From Vitrella brassicaformis CCMP3155 (taxonomy: Eukaryota > Protista > Chromerida), in assembly GCA_001179505.1 (NCBI GenBank), contig CDMY01000306.1, positions 1-64,000 of the forward strand: DNA of 64,000 nt, read 5' to 3'. Below the pieces are notes generated by a model. It did not search any database, was not told the DNA's origin, and worked only from the letters and a program-made list of their open reading frames with translations. Position numbers and translations under genes: made by a program. This document shows positions 52,837-62,364 of this stretch, one piece after another (positions within the stretch are counted from its first letter, which is position 1; every line of letters starts with the position of its first letter).

Positions 52837-52895
52837 GCAGACTGGGGGTCTGTCTTCAGGCCCCCACATCGGCGCCGTCCGTTCTTCCCCCTCCC

Positions 52896-54194
52896 ATGGC
52901 GAATGCTGCCTGTTCTCAGCACGAGGTGGACGTCCTTCTGCCCCACATGCCCTTCAAGAGCGCGATGCACATCTTCAGGAGGAAAGGTACACACATGAGT
53001 AATTGTCCACCTTTCCTCCGCCTGACCATGCAATCAGAATCCTCATTTTGGTCTTGTGTCCAGTGGACAACAACTTCCACTCGCCCAGAGGTGCGCATTC
53101 ATGAGTGAAAGCAGCACATTGAATGTGGGCCTCTCATTTCTCTCTCCCTCTCCTCTGTGTTCCCGGCTGCAGATGCATTCAGGTGCACGTCAGAGCAAAG
53201 TGGGGCGTGTGCGCCTCATTGTGTGCCTTGATGTCCGTCTGTCGGTTGTCCACACTGCAGAAGGTTCTCTGGTAGCTATGAGGGTGCGATGGACTTCCAG
53301 ACCTTCTGCAAGAATGCCCCCGACATCTTTGCGGAAGGTCTGGTTCTCCCCTGTGTGTATAAGCACTATATGTGCATTGTGCACATGCGCGAACTGCTAT
53401 TCATCCAGATTTCGTCAACGAGGCGTATTTGCGGCCTTTGTTCACGGCCATGGACCACGACAAGGACGGGGCCATCAACTACGGCGACTTCCTAAGGTAG
53501 GTGGCTGAACATCTCAGTAAGAATCTCTCTCTCTGTGTTGTGCGGTTGTGTGCCTGCAGGTGCGTGAGTGAGGTGCATGACTACGCGCCGTTCGTGGACA
53601 TTCCCGACATCGAGCACCTTGAGGGCATGCTGACGCTCGAGGCGGGTTGGTAGAAAGAAAGAAAGAAAGAAAGAAAGAAAGGCACACACCTGTCTGTCTG
53701 CATGCATATGCATTTCTTCCCACACACAGTTGTGTCTCCCTCCTTGCTTTCTGTTTGTCTTGGCAGCGTGGAACCTGCTGTTCCTGAAAGTCTTTGGGCG
53801 ATTCACGAGTATACAGGAGGTCGGTCCGTCACATATACACACCAGCGGACAGATGAGTGCGCGTCTGCCTACCTGCCTCGTAGTCTTTTCTCGGCATCTG
53901 CCGCGAGCGACTGCGCCAGCCGGCCAACGCGATCACGCCAGAGGACTTCCACGCGTTCTTGGACACCGTTGGGCTGCGGATGTTCGCTGAGGACGAGGAG
54001 GAGCTCTTCAAGAGGATCGACACGAACGGTATGTACGTGTAAGGCGTGTGTGTCTGTGCGAGGGAGGTGTATTCCTGTCTGTCTGTCTGTCTGTTTGTCT
54101 GCATGTATATGTAGGCGATGGTGTGATCGACTACCAGGAGTGGGAAAATGTTTTGATCTACGGGGCGGTGCATCACGGCATTGTCGTGCGGTGA
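52896..54194 (+). CDS. EF-hand calcium-binding protein, multi-exon
   Basis: Canonical loops DHDKDGAINYGDF and DTNG|DGVIDYQEW, plus degenerate EF helices (AMDFQTFCK, ITPEDFHAFL). Confidence 0.8.
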
Positions 54195-54413: not shown

Positions 54414-55894
54414 CTATTTCCGCATCTTTGCCGCGGCGAAATGGAAGATGAGCACCAGGAGCATGATGGCCAGCAGCAGAGCAAAGCCGGGCTGTGTGAC
54501 GTGGGCGGCGGCGGTCATCTGCCCACCTCCACCGTATACATCTTCCTCACCCATACCCTGCATCCATTCACACACAATATCTACACATACATGCATGTGA
54601 TGGACGAAGGTCGCTTGTAGACTGACCGCGAACTGTCGTGTGTTTTCGCAGACTTTGATGGGCGTGCAGGTGCGCTCCTCAACGTCTTTGCCCTCACACT
54701 CCTTCCCGCCACCCTGACACACGCACACATACAGAGTGGCGCACAAGGGCAGAAAGAGAGAGAGAGAGAGAGATCGGTCTATGCGTGAGTGTGTATGTGC
54801 TGCTCTCCCCCATTTCCTCTCACCCGTGCTTCGGTCTTGACGGACCTCGAGCGTATTTGTTTGGGCGGCGTCTGGCCTTGGGGCGTGCACCTGAGTGTGG
54901 CGCAGACAGACAGGGAGGAAGCACAGCCATGTCTCCGTGTACATATGAATAGGTAGGCGGATGGATGTGCCAACGGCTTTGTGTGGCTCACGGCAATGGG
55001 CACTCCTGCCAATCGCCCCAGCCGCTCCACAAACAGTCACTGACTGGCAGCCAGGCACGCAGGCAGGCAGCCAGCACACCAATGAATGTGTGAGTATGAG
55101 TATGACTGTGAGTGTGAGTGTGTGTGCGCGTGCGTTCCGTCTGTGCAGCTACTGACCGCATCGTTCGGTGGTACATTGTTCAGTGTACGCCCTGTTCTCA
55201 ACGTCGCAAACCGTGTTCTTGCCGGGCTTCCTGCACACCACACGGCATGGATGCCCCACCCATCACACCGGTGTGTGACCGGCGAACCTTTTCCAGATGG
55301 GCTTGCGTGAGCGCTTGCCGCCCCCACAATCGACACGAAGACCGCTGAAGACACAACCGGGGCGTATAGGCATGTTATTTTCTGTAGGGACACAGGTAGA
55401 GAGTGCGGCGCTTACTCTGTTCCCAGGCACTCGCCCCACTCCTCCCAGGTGTACTCACAATCATACTCTGCCGTATACACACAGATGTGCATTCCCCGGT
55501 GTGTTGTGTGGGTTTATCTGCAAAGATCTCTCTCGCTCACCACAGTCGGGTAGGTCTCTTGTACAATCCTGTTTCCGTGTCTGGGGCTTACATCTCTCCG
55601 GCTGATATCAGAAAGTGCACACTCTATGGGATGGCCTGTGTCTATCTGTCTGTATGACATACGTCTTCCTTTGCCTCCTGTGTCTGCTCAAGCGGCGGGT
55701 TGTGGCCCTCAGGCTTACATCTGCACACACACGCAGTCAGGCAGGAAAGAGCCCCAATGCACCAGATTGATGCTCTTTGCAAAGGATGGCACGGTGGTCC
55801 CTTCCTCTCCCTGGCGGACATACGAGGCCGTGCACAGTGGGTCCCAGTCGCCGTATTCGCAGGGAGGGGGATCCTTGCTGCCGCCGCCACCCAT
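54414..55894 (-). CDS. Thrombospondin type-1 repeat membrane protein, copy A (about 230 aa, 9 exons)
   Basis: Spliced product: MGGGGSKDPPPCEYGDWDPLCTAS|CKPEG…DCTRDLPDC|EYDCEYTWEEWGECLG…CGGGKRSRKP…C…C|VSDCLWSGWGDWQECPLP|C…KQIRSRSV…|GGGKECEG…EERTC…|…FALLLAIMLLVLIFHFAAAKMRK*. Confidence 0.85.
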
Positions 55895-56230
55895 CAACGG
55901 TGCTCAAATGAGTCAGACCTCCACAACAACAAACGATTGCGCAAGGAGAGAAATGACGGTCAGGCACGGTGGCTCTTATGGCTGTGTGCCCGCGGTTTGA
56001 ACTCGACGTCGAGAGCGGGCACTGGGAGGGGAGTGAGGGGAATGGCCCCAAACGGCTGAGCTCGCGATTTTTTCCTTCCCTCCTCTCTCCCCAAGAGCGT
56101 TTATCGTGTCAGAGGAGGGGCCGCCACTCGTGCTTCATCCACTCACATCCCCCTACCCATCCATTTCCATCACCACACCTGGGGCTCCCAGTCGCCTTCT
56201 CAGCGGCCAGCACCGGAGCGTGATTCATTC

Positions 56231-57441
56231 ATGGCGGCGCTTCTCTCTCGGTTAACCACGGTGCTGCTCGCCCTCCTGTTCCTCACACACGGCGCCGTTG
56301 CGCAGCAGCAGGCCCCCCAGGAGCCCTGCAAGGAGGGCCACTCGTCGTGTTTCCTCATGCGGGGTCTCCAGCAAGTGTACGATCCGTACCTCACGGACTG
56401 GGGGAGCATCCAGTTCGACCCCAATACGCCTGTATTCGAGCGATTCGAGCGCCTTCTCGGGAGGTGCACTGACAGGAACCTTGGTTTGGGTGCTGGCCTG
56501 ATGCGCATCGTGAACGGCGACGGGACTCTGGTGTGGGAGGGGGCGTATGATGGCGGCCCGCCGGGTCGCAACGCGAAGCCGCCCCCGGTCACCCGAAAGC
56601 ATCCGTATGAGATCGCCAGTATCTCCAAGATGCTCACGGTGAGTGGTACTAGTTGATCGATGAATGGCCGGCCAGTCATGCACTTCTTGTGTTTTGTTGT
56701 CGCTGTTTCTGGTGTGTAAGGCGGCGACCGTTTTCACGTATGTCGACGAGGGCAGGATCAACCTGTCAGGTACCACATACATTGGTGAACAATCCCAAGC
56801 ACCGTCTCAATTGCCTGTGTGTCTGTCTGTCTGTCTGTCTGTCTGCAGACAAGATCATGGATCTGGTGCCGAATGAGACAAAGGTGCCCCCCACGCTGCA
56901 TCAGTACAAGGGCAAGTACTACACCGACCAGATAACTGTCCAGATGCTCCTCAACCACAAGTCGGGACTCCCGGAGTACTGGAGTGTGAGATACCCAGTG
57001 TTACCCACACACATAGATACACCACTGGCAGTGATCTGTATGTCATTGACAGTCGCCCGACTTCAACAAGACCTTCCTCGCCGACGTCAATCGCTGGTGG
57101 GAGCCAGAAGAGGTCATTGCCTTTGCCGCCAAGATGGAGGCCCATTACGTGCCATACACCGGCGAGGACGAGCCTTACATCGAGAAGTACGACCAGATGG
57201 CCGTGTACTACTCCGACACTAACTACATCCTTCTGGGGTTTCTGTTGGAGGAGCTGGAGGGCAAGCCGCTGGCTGAGGTTTACAAGTTGCGGCTGTACGA
57301 GCCCCTCAACATGACCAGCACATGGCTGCGTTATAGAGAGGAAGCAAGGTGGGTATGCCAGCTGCAGATATGGGTACAGAGAGAGACAGCACATCACACA
57401 CACGTGCAAGCCGCCACTCTCTCTGTGTCTCTCTCTCTGTT

Positions 57442-57479
<38 letters not shown>

Positions 57480-58347
57480 TGTGTGGCCACAGGAGCTCTC
57501 TGCCGATATTGAATCGTTACTGGAGCAAGCCGGCCATCCATGGCAATGAGCAGATCGACATGTCTCTGCACCGGCGGCAGACCGCCGAGTGGGCCGGCGG
57601 AGGGCTCGTGTCTACCAATGAGGACCTCATCAAGGTGCTGCGGGGCATCTTCGAGAGCCGTCGGCCAGGACCGGGCGGCCTCTACAAGAACAACGAAACC
57701 GTCCAGCGTTTCTTTGGCCCGGATGCCTTTCATATGCACGTGGATTACGACACCAAAGAAGTAGGTATCGAGTTGCATTGACTGCGTTGCCTTGGCTTGT
57801 GCGGCTACATAAAATGCATTTCGGTGTGTGTGTGTGTGTGTGTGTTGCGCTTTGGTGTTTGTCAGGGGCAGTGGGACAACGTGTACTCGTCTGGTATCTT
57901 CAAGGTCAAGTTCGACAACGAGGAATGGGGCGAGATCCTCGGCCACGAGGTGAGAGCGCCCTGATTAGATCTTATCCCTGTATCCCTGTGTGTGTATTGT
58001 CGTTCATCTTGTTTGGTCCATGCAGGGCTCCGGCAACAGCTTCGTCTACTGGTTGCCGCCCCTCGAAACATCCGATGGCCGCCGGCTCGGCGACTACTAC
58101 TTCGTCGGTAGGTCCCCCCCAGAGGTGCGTGCATTAATTGGTTGTGACTCAATCAGGCACGCTGAACCAGCTGGAGCAGCTGCCGGACATCCCCAACCTA
58201 TTCTGGTGGTTCGACGTCGTCTGGGAGACTGTCGAGCAGCTGGTCGATCTCGAAGTGCAAGAGAAATTAGCTGTCGAGATACCGCAGTTGCCAAAATATT
58301 TGCAAGAACGGCAAGCGGAAGCACAAAGGCCGGCGATCGAAACATAG
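56231..58347 (+). CDS. Secreted beta-lactamase-family (class C/PBP-like) serine hydrolase
   Basis: Signal peptide MAALLSRLTTVLLALLFLTHGAVA, SxxK motif (EIASISKML), ITVQMLLNHKSGL, YSDTNYILLG, PLNMTST, AGGGLVST and GHE|GSG. Confidence 0.9.
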
Positions 58348-58724
58348 TAACCTTTGTGGCCGGTACAAATAATGTGTTGCAGTGGCAGTATCCAGTGGCG
58401 CTAAGTCATTTGGCTCTGGGACTTTTCTTGCTTTCCTGACTGGATAGGCGACTGACCAATCAGTTGGTCTACGTATTTGTGTAGATAATCCCACCTCACC
58501 TCTCTCTTCTGCGCTTTTTTTGCGCTCGTTCCTCGCACCCCCCTTCTTGCCTTTCCAGCTGCGATTTTGGGTCGTCACTCATTAGTGAGTGGGTGGGTTA
58601 CGGAATTGCCGTCTGTCAGGGCTAATGACCAAAAGGGGGTGTGAAGGGGTGTCTGCAGTTGTGCTGCCTTCGTCGTGTATTGAAAGGGCAGGTGTTAGCG
58701 AATGTGCATTACAGTTTGTGTTTG

Positions 58725-58756
<32 letters not shown>

Positions 58757-58883
58757 AATTTGCATGGTTCATTCGCTGAATGCAATGCGCTGTGACGCTT
58801 AGCTTCTTTAAGCTTCTTATTCCTGAGGAGGGGTTCGTTTTGGAGCGTGATGTTGTGCTTTGGGCTTGAGCTGCTTGTCGCCT

Positions 58884-59133
58884 GTGATGGTGCCTGATCG
58901 GCCGTTTGGTTTGTGTCTGGATGCTGCTGCCTTTCATGCTGTGTGGTGCGCTTGTGTGTCTGTGATTGCGTTCCCGCCTTCGTGCCTTTCACGTCAGTTT
59001 GCTGATTGGCTTTCACAGAAACTGTGGTCGTAGAGTCGGCGATGTCTCGCACACAGAAAGGCACAAGAGCGGACCACACGTTATGAATGGCAGCAGCATC
59101 CAGACACAAACCAAGCGGCCGACCAGACATCAC
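58884..59133. repeat. Imperfect inverted repeat (arms about 58884-58960 and 59051-59133)
   Basis: The reverse complement of the left arm, atgaaaggcagcagcatccagacacaaaccaaacggccgatcaggca, matches the right arm atgaatggcagcagcatccagacacaaaccaagcggccgaccagaca with 4 mismatches. Weaker pairing continues inward. Confidence 0.8.
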
Positions 59134-59451
59134 ACATACATCAGTGTTGACTTCATTTGAGACAGAGAGACGTGAGAGAGGGTCGGTGATGTGTCCATAT
59201 GGATGAATTATACACGGAATACCACTCATCTCAGTGAGTAAGAGAGGCAGGGAGTGAGTGGCTGTGTGTTTGTCTATGGAGAAGAGGCAACAGGATTCCA
59301 AGAGATGGTGCGGGCGGGATCCTGCGAATCTTGGGGTGAGCATGCAGGCGGTGAGCAAATCGTCTTGACAGATCTTAGCAGACCTGAGTGTCTTCCTCGG
59401 GCCTATGTATAAGTCACGACGCGTGCCTATCCAGATAGTGCTCCACATGGT

Positions 59452-60644
59452 CTATTGCCTGCACGTTCTCACAAGCACTCTTCTACTCTCGAAGTGAGAC
59501 ATCAGCGCCAAAACCAGAACGGCCAGTAGCAAAGCAAAGGCGGGTTCTGTACCGTGTGAAGCCGCGGACGGCTGGCCACCGTCGCCATGTGTGTCTCCAC
59601 CATCACCCATACCCTGCATTCCATTCATCAACACCACAGCCATGGATGTGTGGGCCATGCAAACATGCAAACATGCAAACATGCAAAGAAGGAGGATGAA
59701 TGAATGAATGAATGGGTGGGTGAGATCATGCACTTCCTGGGTGACTGACTGACCGCGAGTTCTCTTTGCTCTTGTGCGCTTTTGCAGACGGTGAGGCCAG
59801 GGCATGTGCGCTCCTCATTCGCCTCACCCTCGCACTCCTTTCCGCCGCCCTGACTCACACACACACACACACACACCCCTGTGTGTGCTCCCCCCAACAC
59901 AGTCGTCACGTTTCTTTGTGTACTGGTCCACCCGTGCTTCGGTCTTGATCGATCTTGTGCGTGTCTGCTTGGGCGGCGCCTGGCCAGGAGGCGTGCACCT
60001 GAGTGTGGCGCAGACAGACAGGAGGAACACACAGACACACATGCAGACATGTCTCGACGTAATCGACCGTCCCAGCGCATGGACACACGGACAATCTTAC
60101 CCTTAACCACCACCACCACCCTGTCTCGACGCATGGCTGGCTCAACGCATGGCTGGCTCTATATGGTCGGTCGGTTGGCTTACGGGAGTGGGCACTCGTG
60201 CCAGTTGCCCCATTCCTGCCACTCACAGTCATCCACTGAAGGCATGCAAGACGTATATATAGGCACATGTGTGCACTTACATGCATGTGCTCACGTTCGT
60301 ATGTGTGTGTGGACTCATTTGTTCACCGCATTTGTCCGTGGCGCACTTCTCAGTGTACGCCTTGTTTTCAATGTCACACACCGTGTTCTTGGCTGTGGGC
60401 TTCCTGCATACCACACGGAGACACAGGTAGGTAGGCACATAATGAGTGCGCCAATCAGGTGACGCACCTTGTCCAGATGGGCTGGCGTGAGCGCTCTCCA
60501 CCCCCACAATCGACACGAAGACCACTGATGGATGAATAGCACACACGATTGGATGGATAGATTATGGTCTCACTTACTCTTTTCCCAGGCACTCGCCCCA
60601 CTCCTCCCAAGTATACTCACAATCATACTCTGCGTGTGCACCAC

Positions 60645-60697
<53 letters not shown>

Positions 60698-61110
60698 CTA
60701 GGTAGTGTACCGCAGATCGACTGTCTTTCACCGCCCCACTCACCGCAGTCGGGTAAGTCTCTCGTGCAGTCGTGGTTTCGCGTGTTGGGCTTACATCTTT
60801 CCGGCTGATATCAGGCATGCACACTCTGATGGATGGGCTGTGTCTGTCCGTCTGTTTGTGTGACTTACGTCTTCCTTTGCCGTCTGTGTCTGCTCAAGCG
60901 GTGGGTTGTGGCCCTCAGGCTTACACCTGCAAAGTGCAAACACACGCACACACGAACGACGAGCGAGTTAATGAATCTCTGCCTGCGCGGCGCCCGCAGT
61001 ATACACACACACGCATACACACATACGTATGTACTGTACGTTTCAGAGCAGGGCGGGGACCATTCCTGGTATTTGCAGGCAGGCTTCTCAGAGCTCCCTC
61101 CCCCGCCCAT
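59452..61110 (-). CDS. Thrombospondin type-1 repeat membrane protein, copy B (paralog of 54414..55894)
   Basis: Spliced product: MGGGGSSEKPACKYQEWSPPCSET|CKPEGHNPPLEQTQ…|EYDCEYTWEEWGECLGK…CGGGERSRQP…|VDDCEWQEWGNWHECPLP|C…KQTRTRSI…|GGGKECEGEANEERTC…|…FALLLAVLVLALMSHF…*. Intron positions and phases match copy A. Confidence 0.85.
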
Positions 61111-61349
61111 CGATATGATCCTCAACAGCTGACAACGGCGGAGTGTATGGCCCTCAATTTGTGGCTTCTATGCAGTGCAAGAGATGACCTGTGCACCTGC
61201 TCCCCGTGGGGGGTGAAAACCTTCGAGACGCGGGCCCCAAATATTAATGGATCGCGCTGCGAGCTCACCTCGCAGACCTTTTTTCCTCATTTTTCGTGCT
61301 CTAGATGCCGACATCTGCCTAACCTCATCGCAGCAATCAGCAATCAATC

Positions 61350-62364
61350 ATGATGTGGCTGCTCGCCGCCTTGGTGTTGTGGTGTGTGGCGCCTGTGCTA
61401 TCGCTGGCTGCTGTGGACATCCATGTGCACGTAGATCTGGGCCGCGATGATCTCTCGGTGGGTGTCAGGGGGCAGGCAGGCAGGCAGGCAGGCATGGAGA
61501 AGGATGCATGTGCATTATCTCTGTGCACGTGGTCCTTGTGTGTGTGTGGCAGATCTCTCCTAGTGTCAAGGCTGATGTGTTGAGGGCGGTCGGCGAGCAG
61601 CTGGACAAGGCGCTTGCCACAGATGGGTACGCATACACACACACAGACAGACAGACAGACAGGCAGACGGAGAGAGCATAGTCACTGTGTGAAGATGTGT
61701 GCATCAAATGTGTGCAGCAGTGGGATGGTGGCCAATCAGGTGGAGCACGACGGCATGCGTGTGGAGGTGCGCGTGACGGACTCGCAGCAGACCTCTTCCA
61801 GCCAATCAGATAATGAACAGGCACGTCTACTCACACACATAAAACTGTACGTGGGCATATCAGTGTGAGGTGCGTTGGTGCCAAACACAGGATCGAGTTG
61901 ACCTGTTGAAGTGCTCACTGCCGAGCCTTAGCGGCACGTCTTTTGTATGGTCGTCAAAGAGAGACCCAACAAGCTCTGGTGCGCACGCCCACACAGACAC
62001 ACGCAACCACAGAAAGGTACACGTGACGATGTGTGTGAATGGGTGTGTGTGGCAGGCCCCCCCGCTGCTCGTGGGGAGACCTCTGTGCAGTTGGGCGATG
62101 GCGCAGGGCCATGGTTCGACCTCTCGCACACACTCCAGGCAGCAGACGGTACGCACACACGCGGGGGCACCCGTGTTGGTATGTATGGATGGATGGATGG
62201 ACACAGATATGCGTCGGTCGTTCTACGGCCATGGGCAGCTGGTGCATCACGAGAGCGACGCATCCACACTCGACTATGACACGGTGCGGCCGTGCCCTGA
62301 GGACGATGCGGACGGTACCTATGCTTACCACAGGCACCTTGGCCACACTTGTGTGTGAATGTTG

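Follow-up and report, generated by a model that had tools for sequence, protein, structure and literature searches.

How a protein made of extracellular-type modules would reach or cross a membrane without a signal peptide is the question raised by a pair of genes in Vitrella brassicaformis CCMP3155, a free-living photosynthetic chromerid and close relative of the Apicomplexa. The genes, here called A and B, lie at 54414-61110 on the minus strand of contig CDMY01000306.1 (assembly GCA_001179505.1), of which positions 1 to 64,000 were analyzed as one window of 64,000 nt. Six-frame reading and a DNA alignment of the two copies identified them as a paralogous pair, and together with the transcript data they are two tandem, transcribed paralogs encoding single-pass proteins. 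The predicted layout common to both products is an MGGGGS start, three thrombospondin type-1 repeats (TSRs), an acidic Gly-rich stalk, a transmembrane (TM) helix, and a basic tail of 4-12 residues, with no signal peptide.

The A/B alignment consists of 10 conserved blocks with diverged spacers between them. If the blocks are read as exons, all introns are of the GT-AG type, and the open reading frames (ORFs) encode 240 aa in A and 250 aa in B. The models were compared exon by exon with the transcript contigs L021 (JGI) and L022 (Logan ERR558152) for A and L023 for B, as well as with contigs of three public sequencing runs holding this DNA (X1, X7, and X8), which were placed on 55500-61499. X1 and X7 contain spliced RNA, since their contigs carry GT..AG joints, and X8 is also RNA-derived, with a spliced copy-A transcript contig that was placed on the exons of B. 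All nine introns of A occurred as modelled in L021 and L022, and introns 1 and 2 were also confirmed by the run contigs. For B, seven of the nine introns appeared as joints in X1/X7 contigs and eight in L023, which covers all nine when combined. This transcript evidence comprises assembled contigs and not raw reads, a scope that places rare isoforms and the exact cap site beyond reach, and X1 and L021 probably share the same source data. At the protein level, a word search with an intron-spanning open frame (54417-55082, minus strand; region 124-222) retrieved P0001, a MMETSP transcriptome ORF labelled "complete" that is identical to model A residue for residue. A second protein, P0002, is identical to model B over residues 1-124. 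Beyond this point an alternative donor of intron 6 shifts the frame, resulting in a 244-aa protein without TSR3 or TM helix, while the canonical joint 60327/60235 is used in contigs of X1 and X7. Database searches and fold prediction for A were carried out via P0001. The 250-aa model of B entered translation, dN/dS, and hydropathy analyses only, and residues 1-124 of P0002 stood in for its N-terminal half.

The modelled ATGs are very probably the true starts of both proteins. An X1 contig spanning 55824-56028 with zero differences leaves exon 1 of A unbroken to 134 nt upstream of the ATG, and the 5' untranslated region (UTR) measures 134 nt in L021 and 43 nt in L022. No ATG occurs on the minus strand between 55895 and 56137 upstream of A, while an in-frame TGA is separated from the start by three codons and accompanied by further in-frame stops. 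In B, an X7 contig spanning 61038-61221 leaves exon 1 unbroken to 111 nt upstream of the ATG, L023 holds 96 nt of the 5' UTR, and the closest ATG upstream is found at 61290. The DNA similarity of the two copies begins at the ATG and is absent upstream. Hydropathy windows and the PROSITE pattern were used to judge N-terminus, TM helix, and myristoylation. Neither copy is hydrophobic at its N-terminus, where KD10 peaks at -0.03 in A and -0.75 in B over the first 70 aa. Both this absence and the TGA shortly upstream of A had been described in an earlier interpretation made from the DNA alone (the sequence-only reading), and both were found as described. An upstream exon with a signal peptide, named beforehand as the observation that would overturn that interpretation, was not seen at either ATG in the transcript contigs (MMETSP/JGI, Logan ERR558152, X1, X7, and X8), which run collinear with the genome past both ATGs in independent assemblies. 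Spliced-leader trans-splicing was considered as well and ruled out, because the 5' ends of A and B are genome-collinear.

TSRs are disulfide-bonded extracellular or lumenal modules, and the three modules of A and B belong to them with near certainty. Eighteen Cys are conserved between the two proteins, six per module. Modules 2 and 3 carry the W-x-x-W and R-x-R motifs. Module 1 lacks them; in A it keeps its six Cys and W17 and is without a second Trp, a CGxG motif, or an Arg ladder. The profile search against TSP_1 proposed in the sequence-only reading returned a match above the Pfam cutoff for module 3 (PF00090, residues 131-186 of P0001, 22.8 bits against a gathering cutoff of 21.6). TSP1_spondin reached 29.7 bits, which is under its cutoff of 41, and modules 1 and 2 of P0001 received no Pfam call (module 2 was unlisted at E<=1). 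Pfam searches of single exons gave no TSR match, and a six-frame TSP_1 scan of the genome gave 41 matches elsewhere and none at the A/B locus; both scans miss the pair because its exons are short (16-29 aa) and it takes three to encode one TSR. Three-repeat stretches of long TSR arrays found by phmmer aligned with all three modules in register, with Cys columns that were invariant or more than 90% conserved. The AlphaFold2 model of P0001, built on this TSR-array alignment, had a mean predicted local distance difference test (pLDDT) score of 80.2, and its best Foldseek matches in the PDB were properdin, complement C6, and TSR2-3 of thrombospondin-1 (probability 1.0, E about 5e-6 to 1e-5). Model and matches show the elongated three-stranded TSR fold. 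Pfam, array alignment, and AlphaFold2/Foldseek thereby agree on two clear and one divergent TSR, the composition given by the sequence-only reading.

The TM helix is the sole hydrophobic segment of either protein and ends 4 (A) or 10-12 residues (B) before the stop. In A it covers residues 218-236, with a maximum KD19 of 2.74, and is followed by KMRK; AlphaFold2 places a helix at 216-239. The helix of B covers about residues 222-238 and is followed by the tail ESRRVLVRTCRQ, and the two sequences bear out the description of a C-terminal TM helix with a short basic tail that is not of the TRAP type. Charges flanking the helix are acidic on the N-side (-2 and -3) and basic on the C-side (+3 and +4) in the two copies, which fits an N-out/C-in orientation by the positive-inside rule. 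On these sequence features, an N-out topology of A and B is somewhat favored. A glycosylphosphatidylinositol (GPI) anchor was rejected because a signal peptide is absent and the hydrophobic segment is followed by a charged, basic tail of 4-12 residues. Tail-anchored proteins are defined by the absence of a signal peptide and by one TM helix no more than about 30 residues from the C-terminus, and both products have this layout.

Both proteins open with MGGGGS, followed by K in A and S in B. PROSITE PS00008 matches at Gly2 in both, with a small uncharged residue at position 3, Ser at 6, and no Pro at 7. N-myristoyltransferase (NMT) prefers Ser6 and Lys7, and Gly2, Ser6, and, in A, Lys7 fit its consensus. 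A gene for NMT is present in the Vitrella genome (contig C915). The residues GGGGS are identical in A and B (5/5), whereas the rest of exon 1 agrees at 6/17 positions (35%), and the conserved residues outside GGGGS are mostly structural Cys, Trp, Tyr, and Pro. Between the copies, each of the four Gly codons shows a silent third-base change, while Ser6 is kept. The shared myristoylation-type start and its retention next to differing neighbors, both pointed out in the sequence-only reading, are thus present in the two genes. With the local rate of identity, 5/5 has a probability P of about 0.006, which rises to 0.17 with the gene-wide rate of 70%, and the conservation counts as one event because A and B share ancestry. 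Judged from these positions, myristoylation of Gly2 in A and B is reasonably probable.

The proteins of A and B are 70% identical. With a dS of 0.71, a dN of 0.19, and an omega of 0.27, the two genes are under purifying selection. Similarity is unevenly distributed along the pair. Introns 2, 7, and 9 share 85-94% of the bases of the shorter copy (for example 55602-55662 in A and 60805-60868 in B), and the other introns share 63-70%, while exons 2-5 are about 90% identical in protein and exon 1 is far more diverged. This patchiness in the sequences suggests partial gene conversion.

A DNA search, a first-exon pattern search, and a TM-exon search found no further family members in the genome beyond A and B. 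A word search of 5.8 billion proteins returned P0001 and P0002 only. In a phmmer search of 1.84 billion representatives, 793 matches were obtained, which besides P0001 and P0002 were generic and mostly very long multi-TSR proteins with 31-46% identity; in the best 150 of the 793, no other protein combined small size with an MG start, TSRs, and a TM helix at the C-terminus. The ESM Atlas gave generic TSR clusters only, with scores <=0.78, and a literature search found no paper on such proteins. The family was proposed to be undescribed, and no description of it was found in the databases and papers searched.

The resulting layout is contradictory, as it joins an extracellular-type disulfide fold to the absence of a signal peptide, a start that suits a cytosolic lipid transferase, and a helix so near the stop codon that the signal recognition particle (SRP) cannot recognize it during translation. 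The sole parallel backed by experiment is MIC7 of Toxoplasma gondii (TGGT1_261780), which the sequence-only reading had correctly named as a myristoylated protein without classical signal peptide; it is an N-myristoylated micronemal membrane protein without a functional signal peptide (PMC7373427). In MIC7, Gly2 is myristoylated, which leaves no place for a signal peptide. Protease digests the C-terminus of MIC7, yet its lipidated N-terminal EGF domain lies protected in the lumen of the microneme; the authors of that work proposed type III insertion and cited the long TM helix and the positive charges behind it (PMC7373427). By analogy, a MIC7-like fate is the most likely single explanation for A and B, although its probability stays just below an even chance. 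NMT would myristoylate Gly2 during translation, and the finished chain would insert post-translationally via its lone hydrophobic segment, with the basic tail staying in the cytosol and the N-terminal domain crossing the membrane. The 18 Cys would then form the TSR disulfides in the lumen of the endoplasmic reticulum (ER), and the lipidated TSR rod would arrive, as a putative binding module, at the cell surface or in a secretory organelle. The head-to-head neighbors of both A and B encode products with signal-peptide-like starts, which was counted in favor of this fate.

Several points weigh against it. The TM helix lies 4-12 residues before the stop and therefore cannot leave the ribosome before termination; as it is still in the ribosome at that moment, the SRP-dependent type III insertion proposed for MIC7 is inapplicable as such. 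To our knowledge, no pathway moves an N-terminal domain of 215 residues across a membrane post-translationally via a C-terminal anchor, and by formal criteria A and B are tail-anchored proteins. The conservation of GGGGS stems from a single pair and is suggestive, its significance being modest (P 0.006-0.17). Assembled contigs leave room for a rare isoform, and the lipidation, topology, and localization of both products are predictions from their sequences. MG starts are frequent in themselves: they occur in about 6% of Toxoplasma proteins, whereas myristoylation is predicted for only about 1.8% (PMC7373427). The strict "reverse tail-anchored" version of a MIC7-like fate, in which the protein is myristoylated in the cytosol and the 215-residue TSR domain with its lipid then crosses the ER membrane post-translationally, with the extreme C-terminal helix as sole signal, is rather unlikely.

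The formal layout leads to the main alternative, one that the sequence-only reading had not raised, in which a GET/TRC40-type pathway inserts the C-terminal helix post-translationally, the TSRs stay cytosolic, and the N-myristate may serve as a second tether between membranes; the basic tail might then direct the protein to the outer membrane of an organelle. The missing signal peptide, the single TM helix that both copies have 4-12 residues from their end, and the short tail without trafficking or glideosome motif all agree with such an arrangement, and N-myristoylation would suit it without a special route because the modification is cytosolic. It is opposed by the 18 conserved Cys in canonical TSR spacing and the confident, disulfide-dependent TSR fold, while the acidic N-flank and basic C-flank of the helix favor the opposite orientation; moreover, we know of no cytosolic TSR, and the arrangement is judged unlikely. 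The same low probability is given to an N-out protein without lipid, directed by the TM helix alone, in which MGGGGS is a flexible leader kept, for example, for N-terminal processing or stability. The evidence for an ectodomain applies to it as much as to a MIC7-like fate, runs of Gly and Ser serve generically as flexible linkers, a GGGG run also occurs in the stalk, and myristoylation is only weakly predicted by a match to the consensus alone (PMC7373427). A mere leader accords less well with 5/5 identity of GGGGS against 35% in the rest of exon 1 under silent-site turnover, and with Ser6 and Lys7 at the positions preferred by NMT. A missed signal peptide, encoded either by a rare alternative first exon spliced to an AG upstream of the ATG or by an uncaptured transcript start, is the least probable of the explanations and very improbable overall. 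AG dinucleotides do occur 8-20 nt upstream of both ATGs, and assemblies drop rare variants and give no true 5' ends. However, the MMETSP/JGI, Logan ERR558152, X1, X7, and X8 contigs are all collinear across these AG sites, the similarity of A and B ends at the ATG, and the A mRNA start at about 56028 faces that of the divergent neighbor at about 56078 across a gap of about 50 nt, which leaves no room for an exon.

The coordinates of the genes, their modules, and the neighboring hydrolase gene are given in Table 1.

Table 1. Positions of the features of genes A and B and of the adjacent hydrolase gene in the window.
Feature	Position	Strand	Content and basis
Gene A coding region	54414..55894	-	10 exons, 240 aa; ATG 55894-55892, stop 54414
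A exons 1-5	55894-55824, 55720-55663, 55601-55541, 55467-55416, 55344-55288	-	A/B alignment, GT-AG model, L021 and L022
A exons 6-10	55230-55157, 55043-54992, 54890-54824, 54713-54627, 54557-54414	-	Same basis as A exons 1-5
A 5' UTR	55895..56028	-	Genome-collinear, no ATG, three in-frame stops
Exon 1 of A	55824..55894	-	MGGGGSK (NMT-consensus start) and first third of the divergent TSR1
TSR module 1 of A	55541..55894	-	Exons 1-3, residues about 9-63; aligned with TSR arrays; AlphaFold2 pLDDT 72-83
TSR module 2 of A	55157..55467	-	Exons 4-6, residues about 64-124; WEEW, CGGG, and RSRK motifs
TSR module 3 of A	54627..55043	-	Exons 7-9, residues about 125-192; Pfam TSP_1 match
Exon 10 of A	54414..54557	-	Acidic Gly-rich stalk, TM helix 218-236, tail KMRK, stop
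Gene B coding region	59452..61110	-	10 exons, 250 aa; ATG 61110-61108, stop 59452
B exons 1-5	61110-61040, 60926-60869, 60804-60744, 60629-60578, 60524-60468	-	GT-AG model, X1/X7 joints, L023
B exons 6-10	60403-60327, 60235-60184, 59998-59932, 59849-59754, 59613-59452	-	Same basis as B exons 1-5
B 5' UTR	61111..61221	-	Genome-collinear, no ATG, in-frame stop 19 codons upstream
Alternative donor, B intron 6	60295..60326	-	Exon extended by 32 nt; L023 aligns 60405-60295, then 60235
Beta-lactamase-fold serine hydrolase gene	56231..58200 (end approximate)	+	ORF list; Pfam PF00144, 38.8 bits; GT-AG joints

The hydrolase gene is transcribed divergently from A, and its product has a hydrophobic, signal-peptide-like start. 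Its mRNA contig starts at 56078 and that of A at 56028, about 50 nt apart, a gap that points to a very compact bidirectional promoter. On the hydrolase exons (56217-57760), X1/X7 RNA contigs were found with 43 differences in 421 nt and gaps of 3 and 6 nt, at greater depth than the exact-match contigs, which suggests that a hydrolase paralogue or divergent allele with about 90% identity is present elsewhere and expressed. Gene B is head to head with a gene starting near 61350, the product of which also has a signal-peptide-like start. At the other end of A, contig L021 continues into the spliced exons of a convergent downstream gene (52869-54114), and the 3' ends of the two genes therefore overlap or abut. 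The contigs give B a long 3' UTR that follows the genome collinearly from 59612 to 58768. Within it, on the minus strand, is a 288-aa open frame (58582-59448) that is called as a gene on L023; Pfam returned nothing for it, and in DNA this rich in GC it may be open by chance. Positions 60059-60125 in intron 7 of B showed very high summed depth in all four runs, with many contigs that carry unrelated sequence on both sides, and hold a (GGT)n-like run common to many other transcripts.

MIC7 has so far been an isolated case of a myristoylated N-terminus inside the secretory pathway, reached by a route that is undefined. A and B would provide a second, unrelated example, with a different extracellular fold, a TM helix at the very C-terminus, and a host that is a free-living photosynthetic relative of the Apicomplexa. 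Being compact (240 aa) and transcript-verified, the protein is a substrate on which it can be asked how insertion takes place, whether the myristate travels along, and whether the route is older than parasitism. Should the "reverse tail-anchored" version hold, an insertion route would exist that is as yet undescribed, and a MIC7-type lumenal or extracellular myristate in a free-living relative would be no adaptation to parasitism. Should the TSRs of A and B prove cytosolic instead, they would be the first cytosolic use of the TSR fold.

Among known systems, TSRs with a single C-terminal TM helix are found in apicomplexan adhesins, namely the TRAP/MIC2 family and others (TRAP, MTRAP, TRSP, PTRAMP, and SPATR), which have cleavable signal peptides; members of the TRAP family end in an acidic tail bearing a subterminal Trp, and a vWA domain is frequent among them. 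A and B share with the TRAP/MIC2 family the TSRs and the single C-terminal TM helix in an alveolate. They were not assigned to it, as they have no signal peptide, no vWA domain in Pfam, and basic tails of 4-12 residues without the acidic Trp motif. No TRAP orthologues were reported among chromerid TSP1 proteins by Woo et al. 2015 (PMC4501334). With tail-anchored (type IV) proteins, A and B have in common the missing signal peptide, the single TM helix near the C-terminus, and the forced post-translational insertion, whereas the N-terminal domains of those proteins are cytosolic and the extracellular-type disulfide fold and opposite flank charges of A and B set the pair apart. Metazoan TSR arrays (properdin, thrombospondin-1 TSR2-3, and C6) show the same six-Cys pattern, and their Trp/Arg ladder recurs in modules 2 and 3 of A and B but not in module 1; they are secreted with signal peptides, and sequence identity is 22-27%.

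The closest parallel is MIC7, which likewise has an MG start with Gly3, no signal peptide, small disulfide-rich N-terminal modules, and a TM helix on the C-terminal side that is followed by positive charges and a short tail. By domain content, compared here with no direct alignment to the MIC7 sequence, the proteins differ, with EGF modules in MIC7 and TSRs in A and B, where Pfam finds no EGF in P0001, and the likeness is an analogy because TSR and EGF are unrelated folds. The lipidation and lumenal N-terminus of MIC7 were established by experiment and those of A and B are predicted, the tails of A and B have 4-12 residues while that of MIC7 is described as "short", and the host is a free-living alga in one case and Toxoplasma in the other. 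The ancestral unconventional secretory route suggested by the sequence-only reading is a weak claim, because it builds on an analogy between proteins that are unrelated, and the family is represented in a single species by two tandem paralogs without homology to MIC7. At best, A and B would work like MIC7, as its analogues and not as its homologues.

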